Positions 409 to 52,043 of a stretch of DNA of 64,000 nt are shown one piece after another. The stretch lies in sequence record NC_019401.1, one strand, 5' to 3'. Position 1 is the stretch's first letter. Every line of letters begins with the position of its first letter. Under the pieces are notes generated by a model. The model saw only the letters and a list, made by a program, of their open reading frames with translations. It did no database searches and was not told where the DNA came from. Made by a program: the position numbers and the translations under genes.

Positions 409-1584
409 ATGTCACAACTATTAACTGAATCTAAATGGGCTGCTGTAAAAGATAAGCTTGTTGAAGGTCTTTCTGGTAATCGTAAAACTGTAATGGAATC
501 AGTTCTAGATAACCAACGTAAAGTAATGCTACGTGAATCTGCAACCGCTGGTGCAACTTCTGCTGGTAACATCGCTACACTAAACAAGGTAATTCTACCT
601 ATTATTCGTCGTGTAATGCCAACCGTTATTGCTAATGAAATCATCGGTGTTCAACCAATGACCGGCCCTGTTGGTCAAATCCATACCCTACGTGTACAAT
701 ACGCTGATAACGCTCCAGGTGTTGTTGCAGGTGAAGAAGCTCTATCACCATACAAAATCGCTAAGTCTTATACTGGTGAAATTAACTCTGACAATACCGC
801 ACCACGTGCTGCACCAACTTCTCAACTAGAAGGTGTTATGGGTCGTCGTGTTAACATCCGTATTCTACGTGAAACCGTAGAAGCTCAATCTCGTCGTCTA
901 TCTGCTCGTTGGACTGTTGAATCTGCACAAGATGCACAAGCTCAACACGGTATTGACGTTGAAGCTGAACTAATGGCTGCAATCGCTCAAGAAATCACTA
1001 CTGAGATCGACCAAGAACTACTAGCTCGTCTACGTGCTCTACCAGGTGCTGCTGCTGTTGTTTACGATCAATCTAAAGTTACTGGTGTTGCTACCTTCGT
1101 TGGTGATGAACATGCTGCTCTAGCTACTCTAATCAACCGTCAAGCAAACGAAGTTGCTCGTCGTACCAAACGTGGTGCTGCAAACTGGGCCGTTGTTTCT
1201 CCAACCGCTCTAACTATTCTTCAGTCTGCAACTACTTCTAGTTTTGCACGTACTACTGAAGGTACTTTTGAAGCTCCAACTAACGTTAAATTCGTTGGTG
1301 TTCTAAACTCTACTATGCGTGTATACGTTGATACCTATGCTGATGACAGTACTGATGTACTAATCGGTTATAAAGGTAACCAAGAGACTGATGCTGGTGC
1401 ATTCTATTGCCCATACATCCCACTAATGGCTTCTGGTACTGTGATGGACCCAAATACTGGTGAACTAGTAACTAGCTTCCTAACTCGTTATGGCTATGTA
1501 CAACTAACTGATTCTACCAGTTCACTTGGGAATGCAGCCGATTACTACAGCAAAATTGCTATTCGTAACGTTACATTCATGTAA
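409..1584 (+). CDS. gp23: Major capsid protein, T4 gp23-like
   Basis: Motifs IIRRVMPTVIANEIIGVQPMTGPVGQI, RRLSARWTVE, AFYCPYIPL, TRYG; RBS AGGAG; strong codon bias. Confidence 0.97.
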   Translation: MSQLLTESKWAAVKDKLVEGLSGNRKTVMESVLDNQRKVMLRESATAGATSAGNIATLNKVILPIIRRVMPTVIANEIIGVQPMTGPVGQIHTLRVQYADNAPGVVAGEEALSPYKIAKSYTGEINSDNTAPRAAPTSQLEGVMGRRVNIRILRETVEAQSRRLSARWTVESAQDAQAQHGIDVEAELMAAIAQEITTEIDQELLARLRALPGAAAVVYDQSKVTGVATFVGDEHAALATLINRQANEVARRTKRGAANWAVVSPTALTILQSATTSSFARTTEGTFEAPTNVKFVGVLNSTMRVYVDTYADDSTDVLIGYKGNQETDAGAFYCPYIPLMASGTVMDPNTGELVTSFLTRYGYVQLTDSTSSLGNAADYYSKIAIRNVTFM

Positions 1585-10501: not shown

Positions 10502-10789
10502 ATGAGTTTACACGCAATTAACGATTATGTCATTGTAAAACTAATCGATAATACAAAACAAAGTTCTGCTGGTCTTATTTTGACTAGTGTTGAGCCTCCT
10601 TGCACTGGTGTAGTTATCACAGTCGGGCCAGGGCGAGTATTAAATGATGGTTCCCGCGAAGAACATAACATTGAAGTAGGGGATGTGATCGTTTTTGGTA
10701 AATCATCACTAAATATGCCACTAGAAGATGATGATCAAACCTTCTATGTTATGAAAACTAGTGATATATTTGGGAAGAAAAATGGCTAA
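10502..10789 (+). CDS. groES: GroES-like co-chaperonin
   Basis: LHAINDYVIVK, SSAGLIL, GVVITVGPGR, IEVGDVIVFGK. Confidence 0.85.
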   Translation: MSLHAINDYVIVKLIDNTKQSSAGLILTSVEPPCTGVVITVGPGRVLNDGSREEHNIEVGDVIVFGKSSLNMPLEDDDQTFYVMKTSDIFGKKNG

Positions 10790-31911: not shown

Positions 31912-32181
31912 ATGTCGAACAAAAAGCACAATCTTCTAGATAGTATAGTCAACTATACTTCTGATAAAGAAAAACTTCAAAGTTTAGGAAATCGTGCTGA
32001 TCATGCTATTAATTCTATAATCAATCTTCTTGATAGTATTGAAGAAGAATTTGAGGGAGAAGAAGCAGAAGATTTGAAACGTCGCTTATTTTTAAGCATT
32101 AAAAACCGTGATTACCGAAAATTCGAAAAGGGCTTGGAAAACTTAGCCAACAGCGAAAAACGTAAGAACAAAGGTGAATGA
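31912..32181 (+). CDS. Hypothetical protein
   Basis: ORF; TATAAATA at 31840..31847 upstream. Confidence 0.7.
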   Translation: MSNKKHNLLDSIVNYTSDKEKLQSLGNRADHAINSIINLLDSIEEEFEGEEAEDLKRRLFLSIKNRDYRKFEKGLENLANSEKRKNKGE

Positions 32182-32182
32182 T

Positions 32183-32341
32183 ATGAAAAAGAAACGTGTA
32201 AATGAAAATGCTTCATCTGGTGCAACAAGTTCTGGTTCAATCGCATCAGTGAGTGGTGGATTAAATTATCCTTTAATTACTAGAATGCCTAAGACGAATT
32301 TCTTCGGCTATAAAGAATATAAAGGCAACAAAAAGGATTAA
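32183..32341 (+). CDS. 52-aa ORF (not in supplied track) with capsid-like motif
   Basis: MKKKRVNENASSGATSSGSIASVSGGLNYPLITRMPKTNFFGYKEYKGNKKD; AGGTG RBS; fills the gap between 32181 and 32345. Confidence 0.75.
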   Translation: MKKKRVNENASSGATSSGSIASVSGGLNYPLITRMPKTNFFGYKEYKGNKKD

Positions 32342-32344
32342 TAA

Positions 32345-32743
32345 ATGATTTCTTATACATTTTATACGATCAACACAGTAGTTGATATTGGTGATGGCAA
32401 AACACCACCTATAGTGAATAATGAATTCACTGGTGCAATGAATTTGTCTAGATTGGTTGAATGTGTAATGATGTTCGATAGACCTATGATGGTAAGTGTT
32501 GTTAGTACTGAAGTTGATTTGAGTAAGAATAACAATTCTGCATTTTACAATCTCCCTAGTATATGGGGAGAATGTACGGTCAGTACTTTTAAATTTGCAT
32601 TACCAATGGATGTTGAACTTAAAGTTAACGGTATTCCATTAGTACTTCCAACTGAAGTAAATGGTACTCGTTTGACCAAATTCAACAGTGTTACTTCAGA
32701 AAGAAACATTAGTATTACAAAGCAGACCTTTTCTCGTACATGA
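32345..32743 (+). CDS. Hypothetical protein, probably virion-associated
   Basis: ORF within late-type gene cluster. Confidence 0.6.
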   Translation: MISYTFYTINTVVDIGDGKTPPIVNNEFTGAMNLSRLVECVMMFDRPMMVSVVSTEVDLSKNNNSAFYNLPSIWGECTVSTFKFALPMDVELKVNGIPLVLPTEVNGTRLTKFNSVTSERNISITKQTFSRT

Positions 32744-32788: not shown

Positions 32789-33736
32789 ATGGATATACAA
32801 CAAACTGCACAAGAGTTGCAAAAATTTGCTGACGCTAACGGCTTACAGATGGATGTGAGTGCTGCACTAAGTGCTATGGATGCTGGTGATTTTGTCGAAA
32901 TTAACCAAGCAATTGATAATTCTGATAACCGCACTATCATGCAAGTACTTCAAAAGTATAAGGCACAAATGAGCGAGAATTATCATTTATTTTGCGGCAA
33001 TAAAATTAATGAATCCTATGGTGTTAACTTTATGAATTCATTAACACCAAAACAACTTTCTGAGTTTTTCAAACTACATTGTTCATTCGCCTTAACTGAG
33101 AACAGTCATTTAACTTTAGCAGAAATGAAAACTCTAGCGTATGACGTAGTTAATGAAAAAGCTCAACGTGGTGAACTGGATGAGGATTTAGCAAGTACTT
33201 TACGTGCTGGACAAATCAATAAGCAAGCCACAACCACACAACAAACACAAATTAATCCACAAACTGCACAAAAACTTAAACAAGCAGAATTACAGAAAAA
33301 TGCTAATAATGCTAATTTTAAAGTTACTGTGCCGGGGGATACTACCGGAACAAGTGAAATTGAGCCAGTAGTAGGTGTTGATGTTGGTCCAACAACTGAC
33401 CAAACATTAGTTGTAACTAAAGATACAAGTAAACCTAATCAACTAAGTGTATTTGGGTTAGGTGATGTGGAACCTGTAAAAGAAGCAGAATTTGAAGAAA
33501 ATGATTCTGAAGATGTTATGGCTCCACCAGATGTTCAACATCAAGAACAATCAGGTTCACCATTTACCCAAGAGAATCCAGGTTTAGGTGAGTTATCACG
33601 TGAAATTAGTAAAATTGAAGGTGATGAATACAGTTTAGATGGTGAAGAAAGTCCAGAAGGAAATGAAGCAATGAATAATGCTGACGAGATCTTATCTCAA
33701 ATCATTGACTTCTGTTCAAGAATGCGAGGAAAATAA
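32789..33736 (+). CDS. Hypothetical protein, probably head-associated
   Basis: ATAAATA at 32743; Gln/Thr-rich and acidic; INE-S site. Confidence 0.6.
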   Translation: MDIQQTAQELQKFADANGLQMDVSAALSAMDAGDFVEINQAIDNSDNRTIMQVLQKYKAQMSENYHLFCGNKINESYGVNFMNSLTPKQLSEFFKLHCSFALTENSHLTLAEMKTLAYDVVNEKAQRGELDEDLASTLRAGQINKQATTTQQTQINPQTAQKLKQAELQKNANNANFKVTVPGDTTGTSEIEPVVGVDVGPTTDQTLVVTKDTSKPNQLSVFGLGDVEPVKEAEFEENDSEDVMAPPDVQHQEQSGSPFTQENPGLGELSREISKIEGDEYSLDGEESPEGNEAMNNADEILSQIIDFCSRMRGK

Positions 33737-33954
33737 TGAGATCGGTAGATACTAATAAAGGCTATAGCGTTATCGTATCTAATGAAGAATACCGTCTTAT
33801 TAAAAAGGTTGATGCAAATATTCGTGTACCAGTAGATTCATTGGACGAATACTACCAAGAGTTGGGTGAAAAACTATATTCTCGTGGAGTATTAAATAAA
33901 GTAGAAAATAATGGAACCGAATATTTTGTATCAATGAAAAGGAGTAAGCAATGA
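33736..33954 (+). CDS. Hypothetical protein
   Basis: Coupled ORF. Confidence 0.65.
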   Translation: MRSVDTNKGYSVIVSNEEYRLIKKVDANIRVPVDSLDEYYQELGEKLYSRGVLNKVENNGTEYFVSMKRSKQ

Positions 33955-34754
33955 GTGATGATTTCGGAGAATATGAACAACGCAAACAAGGCGTTGATAT
34001 GATGGCTGATATTATGTCAGCATTTGATGATATTGAAGAAGGACGTGCGGTTACTAAGAAATTACCAGACGGTAGTACTTTTACTAACGATTTCGCTCAA
34101 GTTAATCTAGCTGAAACTAAAAACCTTTTACATGCACTCCATGAAGTAACTGGAGAGTACGGAACACTTCTTCAAGAAGATACTGCTTATTATGATCAGG
34201 GTGGTTACATGGATGATAATTCCGACTTGGATAGCATCTATGGTTATTATGAACCACAGGAAGGTGAGAACTTTATTCCTGATCAGCGTGTTACCATGCG
34301 TAAGGTACAGCAGCAACCACAACAAACACAACGACCACAGGCTCAACCAGATAGACCTTATGTTCCAGGAATGAACTGGACAATCGTTGAAGAATCCGTT
34401 TTAGGTATGAAAAATGCTATTATGTATAGCATTAAGTGTAATGCAACAAATCAAGTAGTACTGAATAATATTATGATGTATGAATCAGCATTAGCATTAC
34501 GTAATATTTTAAATTCTGGTAAAACCTTAACTGATCCTAAAATACTTGGGATTATTAGTTCTGGTATCCAATACACGAATGTTGTTCAACAAGCGATTTC
34601 TGCTGCAAGAGAAAGACAAAGTGTTCTTAAAGAATCTCGTTATGATAAAGCACAAGAACTCGATGGTGTTATTGCTGAACATAAAAAGAAAGCAAAGGAA
34701 CTTAAAGATCGTGTACTAAACTTCTTAGAAGAAGAAGGATTCTTAACTAAATAA
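33951..34754 (+). CDS. Hypothetical protein
   Basis: Coupled ORF with Gln-rich linker. Confidence 0.7.
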   Translation: MSDDFGEYEQRKQGVDMMADIMSAFDDIEEGRAVTKKLPDGSTFTNDFAQVNLAETKNLLHALHEVTGEYGTLLQEDTAYYDQGGYMDDNSDLDSIYGYYEPQEGENFIPDQRVTMRKVQQQPQQTQRPQAQPDRPYVPGMNWTIVEESVLGMKNAIMYSIKCNATNQVVLNNIMMYESALALRNILNSGKTLTDPKILGIISSGIQYTNVVQQAISAARERQSVLKESRYDKAQELDGVIAEHKKKAKELKDRVLNFLEEEGFLTK

Positions 34755-34786
34755 GGATATAAATTTCATTTATAAGGAAATAAACA

Positions 34787-35434
34787 ATGTCAAAACAATT
34801 TTCAAAAATGATGGAATCCAAGAGCCGTGTAGAAGCTTTGAATTTGATTCAACTAACTGAATCAAACATTGAAAAAGCTGAAATCGTTCTAGCAGTTAAG
34901 GGTGAAATCGTAGATAAACTTCAACGTCAAGCTGAAGTAATTAACAACATGGGTGTGGACGTACTAGGCCCACTACTTGATCGTATTAAAGCTGAACATG
35001 GTGTTGAAGCCGCAGAAAGCTTCCGTAATAACATCAGTGGTCTTCTTGATCATGCTGTAAAAACTATTATGGACGTAAAAGATAAAATCAGTACTGAAAC
35101 TCTAAAACTAACTGGTGATATTACAAGTTCTCCTGATGTTTCTGATTTAGGTTCAGATGCTGGCTTTGATGACGTATCTCTAGATGTTGATACACCAGAA
35201 GGTGATTTTGATTTCGAAGACGATGCAGATTTAGGTGATGATGTAGCACTTCCAGAACCTACACCTATGGATCGCGAAATGAAAGAATCCGTAAAACCTA
35301 AACGTGTTGGTATTCAATTGGAAAGCGTTAAAGGTACTGTAGGTACTAAGTATTTCGATTCCAAGTCAGAAATGCAACAATGGCTAACTGAAAACGAGAA
35401 AAAAATCGCTAAGGTTATCCGTATCATCAAATAA
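34787..35434 (+). CDS. Hypothetical protein, possibly prohead core component
   Basis: Helical N-half, acidic linker, several xxE-S sites (MME-S, LTE-S, MKE-S, QLE-S). Confidence 0.55.
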   Translation: MSKQFSKMMESKSRVEALNLIQLTESNIEKAEIVLAVKGEIVDKLQRQAEVINNMGVDVLGPLLDRIKAEHGVEAAESFRNNISGLLDHAVKTIMDVKDKISTETLKLTGDITSSPDVSDLGSDAGFDDVSLDVDTPEGDFDFEDDADLGDDVALPEPTPMDREMKESVKPKRVGIQLESVKGTVGTKYFDSKSEMQQWLTENEKKIAKVIRIIK

Positions 35435-35445
35435 CTGGAGGTACT

Positions 35446-35781
35446 ATGAGGTTTAGTCAAATAACCGAAGATGCACCAGGAAAAGACATTCGTAACATGA
35501 TTAGTACTATTGCACTATCTTTAATTGCCACAGGCAGGGAAGAAGTTAGTGTTCAATCATTAATTAATGAAATTAAAAAACGTACTAATATCGATGTTCC
35601 GTATAATGTGATGATGGACATTTTAAACGAGTTGCCATTTGTTCAGGATGCAAATTCTGACATTGTAACCCTTCAAGGTACTGATACTTCACCTGGTGGA
35701 GAGAACGTAGAATCTTCTGAAGAACAAGTTAGCGATATGGCAACTAAAGCAGCAGCAAATAATTTAAAGCAAGATATTTGA
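35446..35781 (+). CDS. Hypothetical protein, probably head-associated
   Basis: Leader MRFSQITE. Confidence 0.6.
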   Translation: MRFSQITEDAPGKDIRNMISTIALSLIATGREEVSVQSLINEIKKRTNIDVPYNVMMDILNELPFVQDANSDIVTLQGTDTSPGGENVESSEEQVSDMATKAAANNLKQDI

Positions 35782-48743: not shown

Positions 48744-49250
48744 ATGAAATCTGTTATTGCCAACGAAAAAATTACTGCGAAGAACGTTCGTGTCGTTGAA
48801 GAAGGTTCTAGCCAAGTAATGGCAATTGCTGCCGCATTAAATCTTGCGTACAGTAAAGAGATGGATCTTATCCAAGTATCTGATCAAGATATTCCTGTAG
48901 TAAAAATTATGGATTTGAACAAATACTTGTATGAGCAAAAACAAGCTGAAAAATCTAACAAGAAGAAACAGCGTGAAACTGCAATTCAGGTAAAAGAAGT
49001 ACAGATTGCTTACAATACTCAAGATAACGATCTTGGTACTAAAGCTAAGTCTGCACAGAAATTTATTTCTGAAGGTAAACATGTACGTATTGTCATGAAA
49101 ATGCAAGGTCGTGCACATTCAAATCCTTCTGTCATTCAGACGAACATTCAAAAGATGAATGAATTTGTTGCTCGTTTAAATGAAACTGATTTTGTTCAGA
49201 ACATTGCAGTACAGGGTAATAACATTACCTGCACAGTTAAGGCCAAATAA
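48744..49250 (+). CDS. infC: Translation initiation factor IF3 homologue
   Basis: NEKITAKNVRVV, ALNLA...MDLIQV, PVVKIMDLNKYLYEQKQ, QVKEV, FISEGKHVRI. Confidence 0.9.
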   Translation: MKSVIANEKITAKNVRVVEEGSSQVMAIAAALNLAYSKEMDLIQVSDQDIPVVKIMDLNKYLYEQKQAEKSNKKKQRETAIQVKEVQIAYNTQDNDLGTKAKSAQKFISEGKHVRIVMKMQGRAHSNPSVIQTNIQKMNEFVARLNETDFVQNIAVQGNNITCTVKAK

Positions 49251-49316
49251 GTAGTAGATAATAGACGGGGTGCTAAATAATTTTTTACACCCTGATAAAA
49301 TAACTGGAGTATTATT

Positions 49317-49850
49317 ATGAAAAATATTGTGCGTGAAGTATTTTCCCTACCTGCTATGGACGTGGTAAAGGCTTCTTACAAAGATTCAGTATATTACATT
49401 GCTGGTTCAAGTGATATTACTGAATATGTTTCAACTATTAAAGACTCATTTGATATTAATGAGATTGAAGCAATCAAACATGGTTTGAATGCGTTTTTAA
49501 AAGAACATCCAATTAATAAAGTACTGAATGTTCCAAAATATAATCTTGCTCTAATCAACACTGCAAGCACAAGTGATGACTACGTTTTAAATATCGTTAC
49601 CGACATTTTCCGTAAAGATATTGAAGAAGCACACAACATTGTAGATACAATCAAATATGAAGGGTTGTGTGTCGTAGGCACTTATACTTACGAGATTGCA
49701 CATACTTTTGCATGTATGGTTGAAACTGCAAATATGCAAATGCAGCAAGATATGGAAACAGATATTATTCCCGTTTATAAATCTAATTCTATGGATAGTC
49801 TAGAAGTTATAGAACAACTAATTCGTCGCGATCATCCAGAAGATCTTTAA
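49317..49850 (+). CDS. Protein with C-terminal ClpS-like domain
   Basis: YNLALIN...YVLNIVTDIF...EEAHNIVDTIKYEGLCVVGTYTYEIA parallels ClpS YKVILVN...FVIDVLQKFF...[26 protein letters not shown]. Confidence 0.7.
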   Translation: MKNIVREVFSLPAMDVVKASYKDSVYYIAGSSDITEYVSTIKDSFDINEIEAIKHGLNAFLKEHPINKVLNVPKYNLALINTASTSDDYVLNIVTDIFRKDIEEAHNIVDTIKYEGLCVVGTYTYEIAHTFACMVETANMQMQQDMETDIIPVYKSNSMDSLEVIEQLIRRDHPEDL

Positions 49851-49855
49851 AATTT

Positions 49856-52042
<2,187 letters not shown>

Positions 52043-52043
<1 letters not shown>

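Follow-up and report, generated by a model that had tools for sequence, protein, structure and literature searches.

T4-like phages are known to load their heads by means of short N-terminal tags that are trimmed by the prohead protease. [quoted passage not shown] The protease further takes off 65 residues of the capsid protein gp23 and 10 residues of gp24, the latter after L-R-E near the N-terminus (PMC9546572). Before the head expands, residues 66–105 of gp23 are disordered and face inwards, probably in contact with the scaffold core; once it has expanded they lie on the outside and make up the N-fist and N-arm, through which adjacent subunits are bound (PMC9546572; PMC9958956). Here we describe GAP32_288, a small gene of Cronobacter phage vB_CsaM_GAP32 (NC_019401 / JN882285), a Rak2-like jumbo myovirus of 359 kb (358,663 bp). 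The gene lies in a stretch of 64,000 nt that was analysed as a whole (the window, genome positions 186001–250000, with 100% identity to the GAP32 sequence), and residues 4–39 of its product are, on profile comparison, homologous to residues 39–73 of the major capsid protein (MCP) of the same phage. With a confidence only slightly better than even, we favour the reading of GAP32_288 as a head module in its smallest, stand-alone form, which would be loaded into the prohead, cut after Glu8 and kept as a basic peptide.

GAP32_288 shares features with each of the T4 systems, and differs from all of them. As with the T4 internal proteins, distant members of the small family around GAP32_288 bear leaders that resemble a capsid-targeting sequence (CTS); unlike the internal proteins, to which the family has no sequence similarity, the conserved unit lies after the cut, copies the MCP N-terminus and often forms the C-terminus of a larger carrier, while the GAP32 leader itself is not CTS-like and packaging of GAP32_288 is something that we infer. 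The predicted product of 4.6 kDa has the few-kDa size of the T4 internal peptides, but whereas the gp22 and gp67 fragments are pieces of scaffold or core proteins, it comes from a dedicated gene or a terminal module, is MCP-like and has a basic tail. Compared with mature gp23 (gp23*), the counterpart of the N-fist/N-arm segment is in GAP32_288 detached from any HK97-fold body. The likeness to gp24 is that of a further gene that stems from the MCP and looks like it, with the same type of cut site (the cut being predicted for GAP32_288), but gp24 duplicates the entire fold and forms pentons, whereas GAP32_288 copies only about 35 residues. Outside this lineage, short basic or terminal peptides that are freed by the capsid maturation protease or need it, or that dock cargo on the inner face of the shell, include the adenovirus core peptides mu (pX) and pVII, the encapsulin cargo-loading peptides and the tail of the HK97 protease; these are unrelated in sequence and lineage, and serve as an analogy only. 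Protease-processed head proteins are thus an established theme in T4-like phages, to which the module belongs, and what is new is the mimicry of the capsid arm, the mostly C-terminal placement and the existence of a stand-alone peptide form, in a different and widespread unit of about 45 residues, seen in jumbo phages of the Rak2/PA5oct branch and in uncultured phages related to them. A description of the motif or of the module was not found in the literature.

Homology to the major capsid protein's N-terminal segment

The preliminary description of this open reading frame (ORF) had proposed that it copies a short motif near the N-terminus of the MCP, in a stretch which we located at MCP residues 43–58. 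The match was borne out, and is stronger than had been claimed. When 12 small orthologues and 11 MCPs were compared as profiles in hhalign, the two segments named above were aligned over 35 columns (probability 92.7%, E = 4.3e-7), and a hidden Markov model (HMM) of 121 small homologues, run unfiltered over the 5378 ORFs from all six frames of the GAP32 genome, had the MCP as its sole other match (E = 1e-7, 30 bits, bias 0.1), with the next best hit at E = 0.43. With the MCP as query, the small ORF was retrieved in three genomes (E = 5.6e-5, 0.03 and 0.044), the value of 0.03 being that for GAP32's own genome. A tblastn search of 50,697 phage records with a distant family member of 66 aa matched 32 records, and all 25 matches listed out of these 32 records were in MCP genes of PA5oct-like or Rak2-like phages, covering 80% of its length. 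The shared stretch starts with a hydrophobic-x-Glu site, continues with the motif of Ala, Ser, Gly and Thr residues, and ends with Y-P-L-I-T-R-M-P in GAP32_288 versus L-P-I-I-R-R-V-M-P in the MCP; the likeness seen in hhalign therefore goes further than previously noticed, taking in the P-[LI]-I-x-R-x-P portion of the N-arm. GAP32_288 does not match the HK97-fold body of the PF07068 (Gp23) family, and since the homology is limited to MCP residues 39–73, GAP32_288 copies the N-terminal segment only and is not a capsid protein. The DNA identity of the two motif regions is 50%, which excludes a recent gene conversion between GAP32_288 and the MCP gene and indicates an old divergence.

It is scarcely credible that these are two Ser/Gly/Ala/Thr-rich stretches which resemble each other by chance, with neither a common origin nor a shared function. 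Small residues do indeed make up the motif, and pairwise matches taken singly are weak, as illustrated by the E-value within GAP32's own genome, but significance is reached at the profile level with negligible composition bias, the likeness extends into the P-[LI]-I-x-R-x-P part, which is not of low complexity, and positions that are invariant in the small family align with invariant positions of the MCP. Furthermore, a six-frame scan of the whole 358,663-bp genome for G[AS]T[ST][AS]G.[IV]A gave just two instances, one in GAP32_288 and one in the MCP. Low complexity in Ser and Gly, which the preliminary description had named as its own possible undoing, did not hold as an explanation.

In the MCP, residues 46–84 align with residues 15–52 of the mature T4 gp23 chain (about 80–117 of full-length gp23), and the segment copied by GAP32_288 corresponds to gp23 residues of about 80–105, while the first match of the PF07068 model begins around MCP residue 55. 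An L-x-E sequence, with a variable middle residue, directly precedes the motif in every Rak2-like, Vibrio and PA5oct MCP that was read, which makes Glu43 the likely maturation site of the MCP. The sole experimental hint of such a cut is that the RaK2 MCP migrates slightly faster in gels than predicted, as reported in the published RaK2 study. The pro-piece of the MCP (window 409–540, residues 1–43) contains three conserved hydrophobic-x-Glu sites, at E7, E19 and E43, and on this pattern may be cut more than once; a fourth site, V-M-E30, is not conserved, with RaK2 having Asp at this position. In S-RIM2, PhiW-14, GR28A and Ds23CZ (Gp23-type phages comprising a cyanophage, PhiW-14 and two Ackermannviridae), the MCP arms are less similar, and both the exact MCP motif and the module were missing from this small sample of four phages, which fits a co-occurrence of the module with the Rak2/PA5oct type of MCP.

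Conservation and selection of the small gene family

Searches of relatives by tblastn, which had been put forward as a check on the small ORF, recovered GAP32_288 orthologues from 73 records of Rak2-like phages, and a protein search gave about 180 clusters of 49–67 aa, including one from Vibrio phage 2.275.O. The product matches phrog_17311, a family of unknown function, with E = 6.8e-36 (residues 1–52 on profile positions 1–52 of 54), and viral clusters in the ESM Atlas are labelled "hypothetical protein" and nothing else. Computed pairwise over the conserved core, the median ratio of non-synonymous to synonymous substitutions (dN/dS) is 0.22 (range 0.05–0.3; 0.05 versus phage CBB). The gene order of helicase, 287-like gene, small ORF and 289-like gene is retained into distant contigs, and stop and start codons frequently overlap. 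GAP32_288 is thus a real gene under purifying selection. The preliminary description was mistaken in calling it unannotated in GAP32, since both GenBank and RefSeq carry GAP32_288 with the label "hypothetical protein"; the RaK2 orthologue, in common with those of some other relatives, is without annotation.

None of the 12 small orthologues had a match in Pfam, and T4 gp23 was not matched in a search of the PDB with the small family. Weak matches to PsaE in the Pfam and PDB searches (E = 0.04–1.8) were taken as chance.

Several variations around the gene were observed in individual relatives. In RaK2 (NC_019526, around 120706–120858) the small gene is intact, and an extra ORF130 separates it from the 287-like gene, while in Xanthomonas phage XaC1 an extra ORF of 229 aa (XaC1_373) is inserted after the 287-like gene and ahead of the small gene, suggesting that the junction before the small gene tolerates insertions. 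The annotation beneath the tblastn match in K64-1 and Muenster includes an EDxHD homing endonuclease. In Escherichia phage vB_Ec-M-J, EcMJ_374 is annotated with 64 aa, nine of which are extra N-terminal residues that overlap the gene upstream, and the alignment suggests that the true start is an internal Met, giving a protein of 55 aa.

Cut-site pattern and predicted processing

Of 120 small homologues, 118 have a Glu residue directly before the motif, and the residue two positions before this Glu (P3) is Leu in 54, Ile in 42, Val in 20, and Phe and Met in one each, so that 116 of the 118 have Leu, Ile or Val; the leader is otherwise variable, with a length of 4–20 residues. Glu8 of GAP32_288 is itself invariant, and in the hhalign comparison is the positional counterpart of the Glu of L-R-E43 in the MCP, and cleavage after Glu8 is plausible from this pattern. 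The preliminary description had suggested that the small protein could be processed in the same manner as gp23; here the conserved [LIV]-x-E pattern and the presence of an encoded protease of the Peptidase_S77 family (78 bits) lend substance to the suggestion, and it is the cut itself that we infer. Cleavage after Glu8 would leave a peptide of 44 aa with an isoelectric point (pI) of 9.8, and the predicted cut peptides of the small homologues have a median pI of 9.9, with tails rich in Lys and Arg throughout the family.

Leaders such as M-R-Y-T-E-F, M-K-I-S-E-I-I-N-E and M-R-A-Y-E-F-I-K-E are found at the start of many of the carriers described below and of many distant stand-alone members, and the last of these leaders is followed straight away by the motif. 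These leaders resemble the CTS of T4. Short leaders of the hydrophobic-x-Glu type were also observed in virion proteins elsewhere in the window, at 34787–35781 (GAP32_293 and GAP32_294) and at 50433–52043, ending in M-M-E10, I-T-E8 and L-Q-E9, of which the last resembles the T4 CTS.

For the GAP32_288 peptide alone, AlphaFold2 gave no confident fold (predicted local distance difference test, pLDDT, 61.5; predicted template modelling score, pTM, 0.19). This would fit a segment that becomes ordered on binding, as is the case for residues 66–105 of T4 gp23, and is uninformative when taken alone.

A portable module in other proteins

Searching 1.84 billion representative proteins with a profile built from 59 small members gave 80 matches at a cut-off of E <= 1e-3; six of these were already among the clusters from the protein search, leaving 74 representatives. 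Stand-alone proteins made up 31 of the 74, and 27 were larger proteins of 118–826 aa with the module at the extreme C-terminus, with the remainder having the module at the N-terminus (four), in tandem (two) or internally (six), or being long low-complexity proteins, which were discounted (four). Ten carriers were independently confirmed with the PHROG model (E = 1e-5 to 1e-12). The carriers are mutually unrelated, one containing LysM and one DUF6267 while most lack a Pfam match, and most end in a sequence rich in Lys and Arg. Wherever the motif was located in these representatives it follows a Glu, mostly with a hydrophobic residue two positions earlier, and the N-terminal modules that were read have a second [LIV]-x-E after the basic tail; with such flanking sites, the unit would be released as a separate peptide in all architectures. 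As proposed here, the module consists, in this order, of a prohead-protease site of the T4 type ([LIV]-x-E), a copy of about 30 residues of the start of the mature MCP (the N-fist and the first half of the N-arm), a short hydrophobic patch and a Lys/Arg-rich tail.

Two carriers could be placed on contigs, and both occupy the slot of GAP32_288, between homologues of GAP32_287 and of GAP32_291–294. The fused forms of 120–150 aa were considered as GAP32_287-GAP32_288 fusions, and this was rejected as they have no similarity to GAP32_287. One metagenomic protein of 701 aa (P0127) combines a LysM domain with a C-terminal module and has weak PHROG matches to transglycosylase and endolysin families, and is possibly a cell-wall-binding protein that is packaged in the head.

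The occurrence of large, module-ended proteins in the same genomic slot in distant relatives, together with the 27 C-terminal fusions, could also mean that the module merely serves as a tag for loading and processing, and that the stand-alone gene of the Rak2 type is a functionless remnant left after loss of its cargo. We consider this unlikely, as the stand-alone form is under strong purifying selection (dN/dS 0.05–0.3), is kept across genera and in 31 further stand-alone clusters, and has conserved its basic tail. A module without cargo that is nevertheless under purifying selection implies that the peptide itself, beyond tagging, is probably functional. The fusions and the CTS-like leaders together suggest, as far as such architectures can be read, an internal head peptide or module that is liberated by cleavage, and the MCP-like part may in addition dock on the shell.

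Virion evidence

A link to virions comes from the relative PA5oct, in which the family profile matches two places, the N-terminus of the MCP (E = 3.8e-8), where L-V-E is followed by the motif, and gp281 (PQE65_gp281). The stand-alone small gene was not found in PA5oct with this profile. The gp281 protein is encoded next to the large terminase gene, and its RefSeq entry carries the note "structural protein, ESI-MS/MS". It shares with GAP32_288 the motif after a V-E-E site, here at residues 43–58 behind K-V-E-E, and on this basis looks like a protein with a propeptide of about 42 residues, but differs in being acidic and 498 aa long, in having the motif near the N-terminus and in lacking a basic tail directly behind the motif.

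The possibility raised in the preliminary description was that a free mimic of the N-arm plugs or stabilises special positions in the shell, or modulates assembly. After cleavage, such a surrogate for the N-fist/N-arm would dock where this part of the MCP is missing, such as near the portal or the vertices; in a variant of this, the peptide fills the inner grooves left by the outward-moving MCP arms, with the basic tail possibly tying DNA to the wall. The homology covers exactly the segment that forms the N-fist/N-arm in T4, which contacts four subunits, and the peptide is, like the arm, disordered alone in the AlphaFold2 prediction. Moreover, searches with the MCP protein and its family did not find a second Gp23-family gene, such as one for a gp24-like vertex protein, in the GAP32 genome, so special positions in the shell may need another solution. 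Still, we judge such a role unlikely, as the fused and tandem forms and the strongly basic tails are better suited to an internal peptide than to a stoichiometric component of the shell, and as the T4 arm finishes on the outer face of the capsid, so that a free peptide inside the head would need a way of getting there. Of the capsid structures considered, the map of the relative phAPEC6 (10 Å) is too low in resolution to reveal such a peptide, the capsid structure of phiKp24 is that of an unrelated phage with an MCP of 597 aa and was unusable, and a high-resolution map of a Rak2-like capsid was not found in the literature.

Orthologues of the GAP32_288 peptide have not been detected in the virions of phages CBB and phAPEC6, as detailed below, which would also be expected of a cytoplasmic decoy or regulator, an abundant look-alike of the MCP that competes for a partner of nascent MCP without entering the head. 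Such a partner could be the prohead protease, with effects on the timing of maturation or a shielding from host sensors that are triggered by cleavage, or else a chaperone or a defence protein of the host by which the capsid protein is recognised. The conserved mimicry of both the cut site and the adjacent segment is in line with this, the phage encodes a GroES-like co-chaperonin, and free protease is sensed by hosts, with the T4 prohead protease cleaving loops of CD-NTases and thereby triggering the cyclic-oligonucleotide-based antiphage signalling system (CBASS), as reported in PMC12991175. On the other hand, the carriers with CTS-like leaders and the virion protein gp281 of PA5oct tie the module to the head, GAP32_288 is located in a block of genes for virion proteins, and the Lys-rich tail and the fusion to the ends of large proteins would be needless for a decoy. 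We therefore regard this role as quite improbable.

Proposed role of GAP32_288

From a selected gene with homology to the MCP, a conserved cut-site pattern, an encoded prohead protease and the modular nature of the unit, we propose the following steps for the head loading, the cut and the later role of the peptide in the favoured reading, that of a stand-alone head module. The peptide would be produced alongside the neighbouring virion proteins, and would enter the prohead by binding of its MCP-like core to the partner of the MCP N-terminal segment, be this the scaffold core, the protease or the inner surface of the shell. The Peptidase_S77 protease would then cleave after Glu8, and the resulting basic peptide of 44 residues (4.6 kDa, pI 9.8) would remain with the DNA in the head, comparable to the internal proteins and peptides of T4.

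Several observations weigh against this proposal. The leader of GAP32_288, MKKKRVNE, is unlike the T4 CTS, and short leaders ending in [LIVM]-x-E, tried as a marker of virion proteins, were about as common in non-virion as in virion ORFs of the window, so that such a leader alone is weak evidence. The cut of the MCP at Glu43 is itself predicted from homology. In the virion mass spectrometry of phage CBB, the GAP32_288 orthologue CBB_293 was undetected, while its neighbours CBB_292 (the orthologue of GAP32_287; one peptide) and CBB_294 (four peptides) were detected; in phAPEC6, gp186c–189c are missing from the list of 62 virion proteins, and none of the published virion proteomes reports the peptide in particles. 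The T4 late promoter TATAAATA was found 14 times on the + strand versus about 46 expected, and is thus not enriched and uninformative on timing.

The proteome negatives are weak, since cleavage after Glu8 would leave only one fully tryptic peptide, which has 7 aa. Peptides of this kind would escape standard virion proteomics; the RaK2 proteome was searched for full-tryptic peptides against annotated ORFs, a set to which the small ORF does not belong. The uncut form of GAP32_288 does have a good tryptic peptide of 29 residues, and the negative proteomes suggest that this form is not abundant in virions.

More tentatively, the module may be a second signal for head loading or anchoring which functions by mimicry of the MCP, following the contacts of the mature MCP N-terminus into the prohead either alone or with cargo in front of it, with the basic peptide, once freed by the protease, linking DNA to the sites on the shell that are normally used, or have been vacated, by the MCP arms. 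Were this mimicry to be true, such a portable tag of 45 residues for bringing proteins into jumbo-phage heads might constitute a new class of capsid-mimicking internal peptide, a classification that we offer with equal reserve. Should the module as such be what the data indicate, it would explain phrog_17311, a conserved gene family of unknown function, reveal the part of the MCP that is read by the assembly machinery, and provide a natural tag for loading cargo into very large phage heads.

Genomic context

The coordinates of GAP32_288, its parts and the other features discussed are given in Table 1. Reading from the sequence, the stop codon of GAP32_287 finishes 1 nt ahead of the ATG of GAP32_288, and in distant relatives the start of the small gene overlaps the stop of the gene upstream, an arrangement that suggests coupled translation in these relatives. 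Homologues of GAP32_287 precede the module-bearing gene in distant contigs as well. Annotated virion structural proteins in the vicinity of GAP32_288 are GAP32_287, 289, 290, 291, 293 and 294.

Table 1 Features of the GAP32_288 locus and of the MCP and prohead protease genes (window positions, except where genome positions are indicated)
Feature	Position	Strand	Description
GAP32_288	32183..32341	+	52 aa, ORF including stop codon; member of phrog_17311
Shine-Dalgarno-like AAAGGTGA	32170..32177	+	5 nt 5′ of the GAP32_288 ATG; inside the end of GAP32_287
GAP32_288 leader MKKKRVNE, aa 1–8	32183..32206	+	Ends in V-N-E; predicted prohead-protease site after Glu8
GAP32_288 MCP-like core, aa 9–39	32207..32299	+	A-S-x-G-A-T-S-x-G-x-I-A-S-V, then Y-P-L-I-T-R-M-P; hhalign versus MCP aa 44–73
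GAP32_288 C-terminal F-F-G-Y and Lys-rich tail, aa 40–52	32300..32338	+	From alignments
GAP32_287	31912..32181	+	Virion structural protein of 89 aa (RefSeq); constant upstream neighbour
GAP32_289	32345..32743	+	Virion structural protein of 132 aa (RefSeq); phrog_14976; downstream neighbour
GAP32_250 (MCP)	409..1584	+	Pfam Gp23 PF07068, E = 7e-92; sole Gp23-family gene found in the genome
MCP aa 39–73	523..627	+	Predicted maturation site L-R-E43 and N-fist/N-arm segment copied by GAP32_288
Prohead protease	genome 184538–185014		PF03420 Peptidase_S77, 78.3 bits; just upstream of the window, adjoins scaffold (GAP32_249) and MCP genes

Directly 3′ of the gene for the basic peptide is a row of genes for strongly acidic, low-complexity proteins, GAP32_290, 292 and 293 (window 32789–35434), of which GAP32_290 and 293 are annotated as virion structural proteins and GAP32_292 as hypothetical. 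These may be components of the core or of an inner body that pair with basic peptides. The GroES-like co-chaperonin (Cpn10) of the phage is GAP32_262 (window 10502–10789), which is possibly the functional counterpart of T4 gp31 in the folding of the capsid protein. Finally, the adjacent genes GAP32_313 and GAP32_314 (window 48744–49850) are annotated as an IF3-like translation initiation factor and a ClpS-like adaptor.

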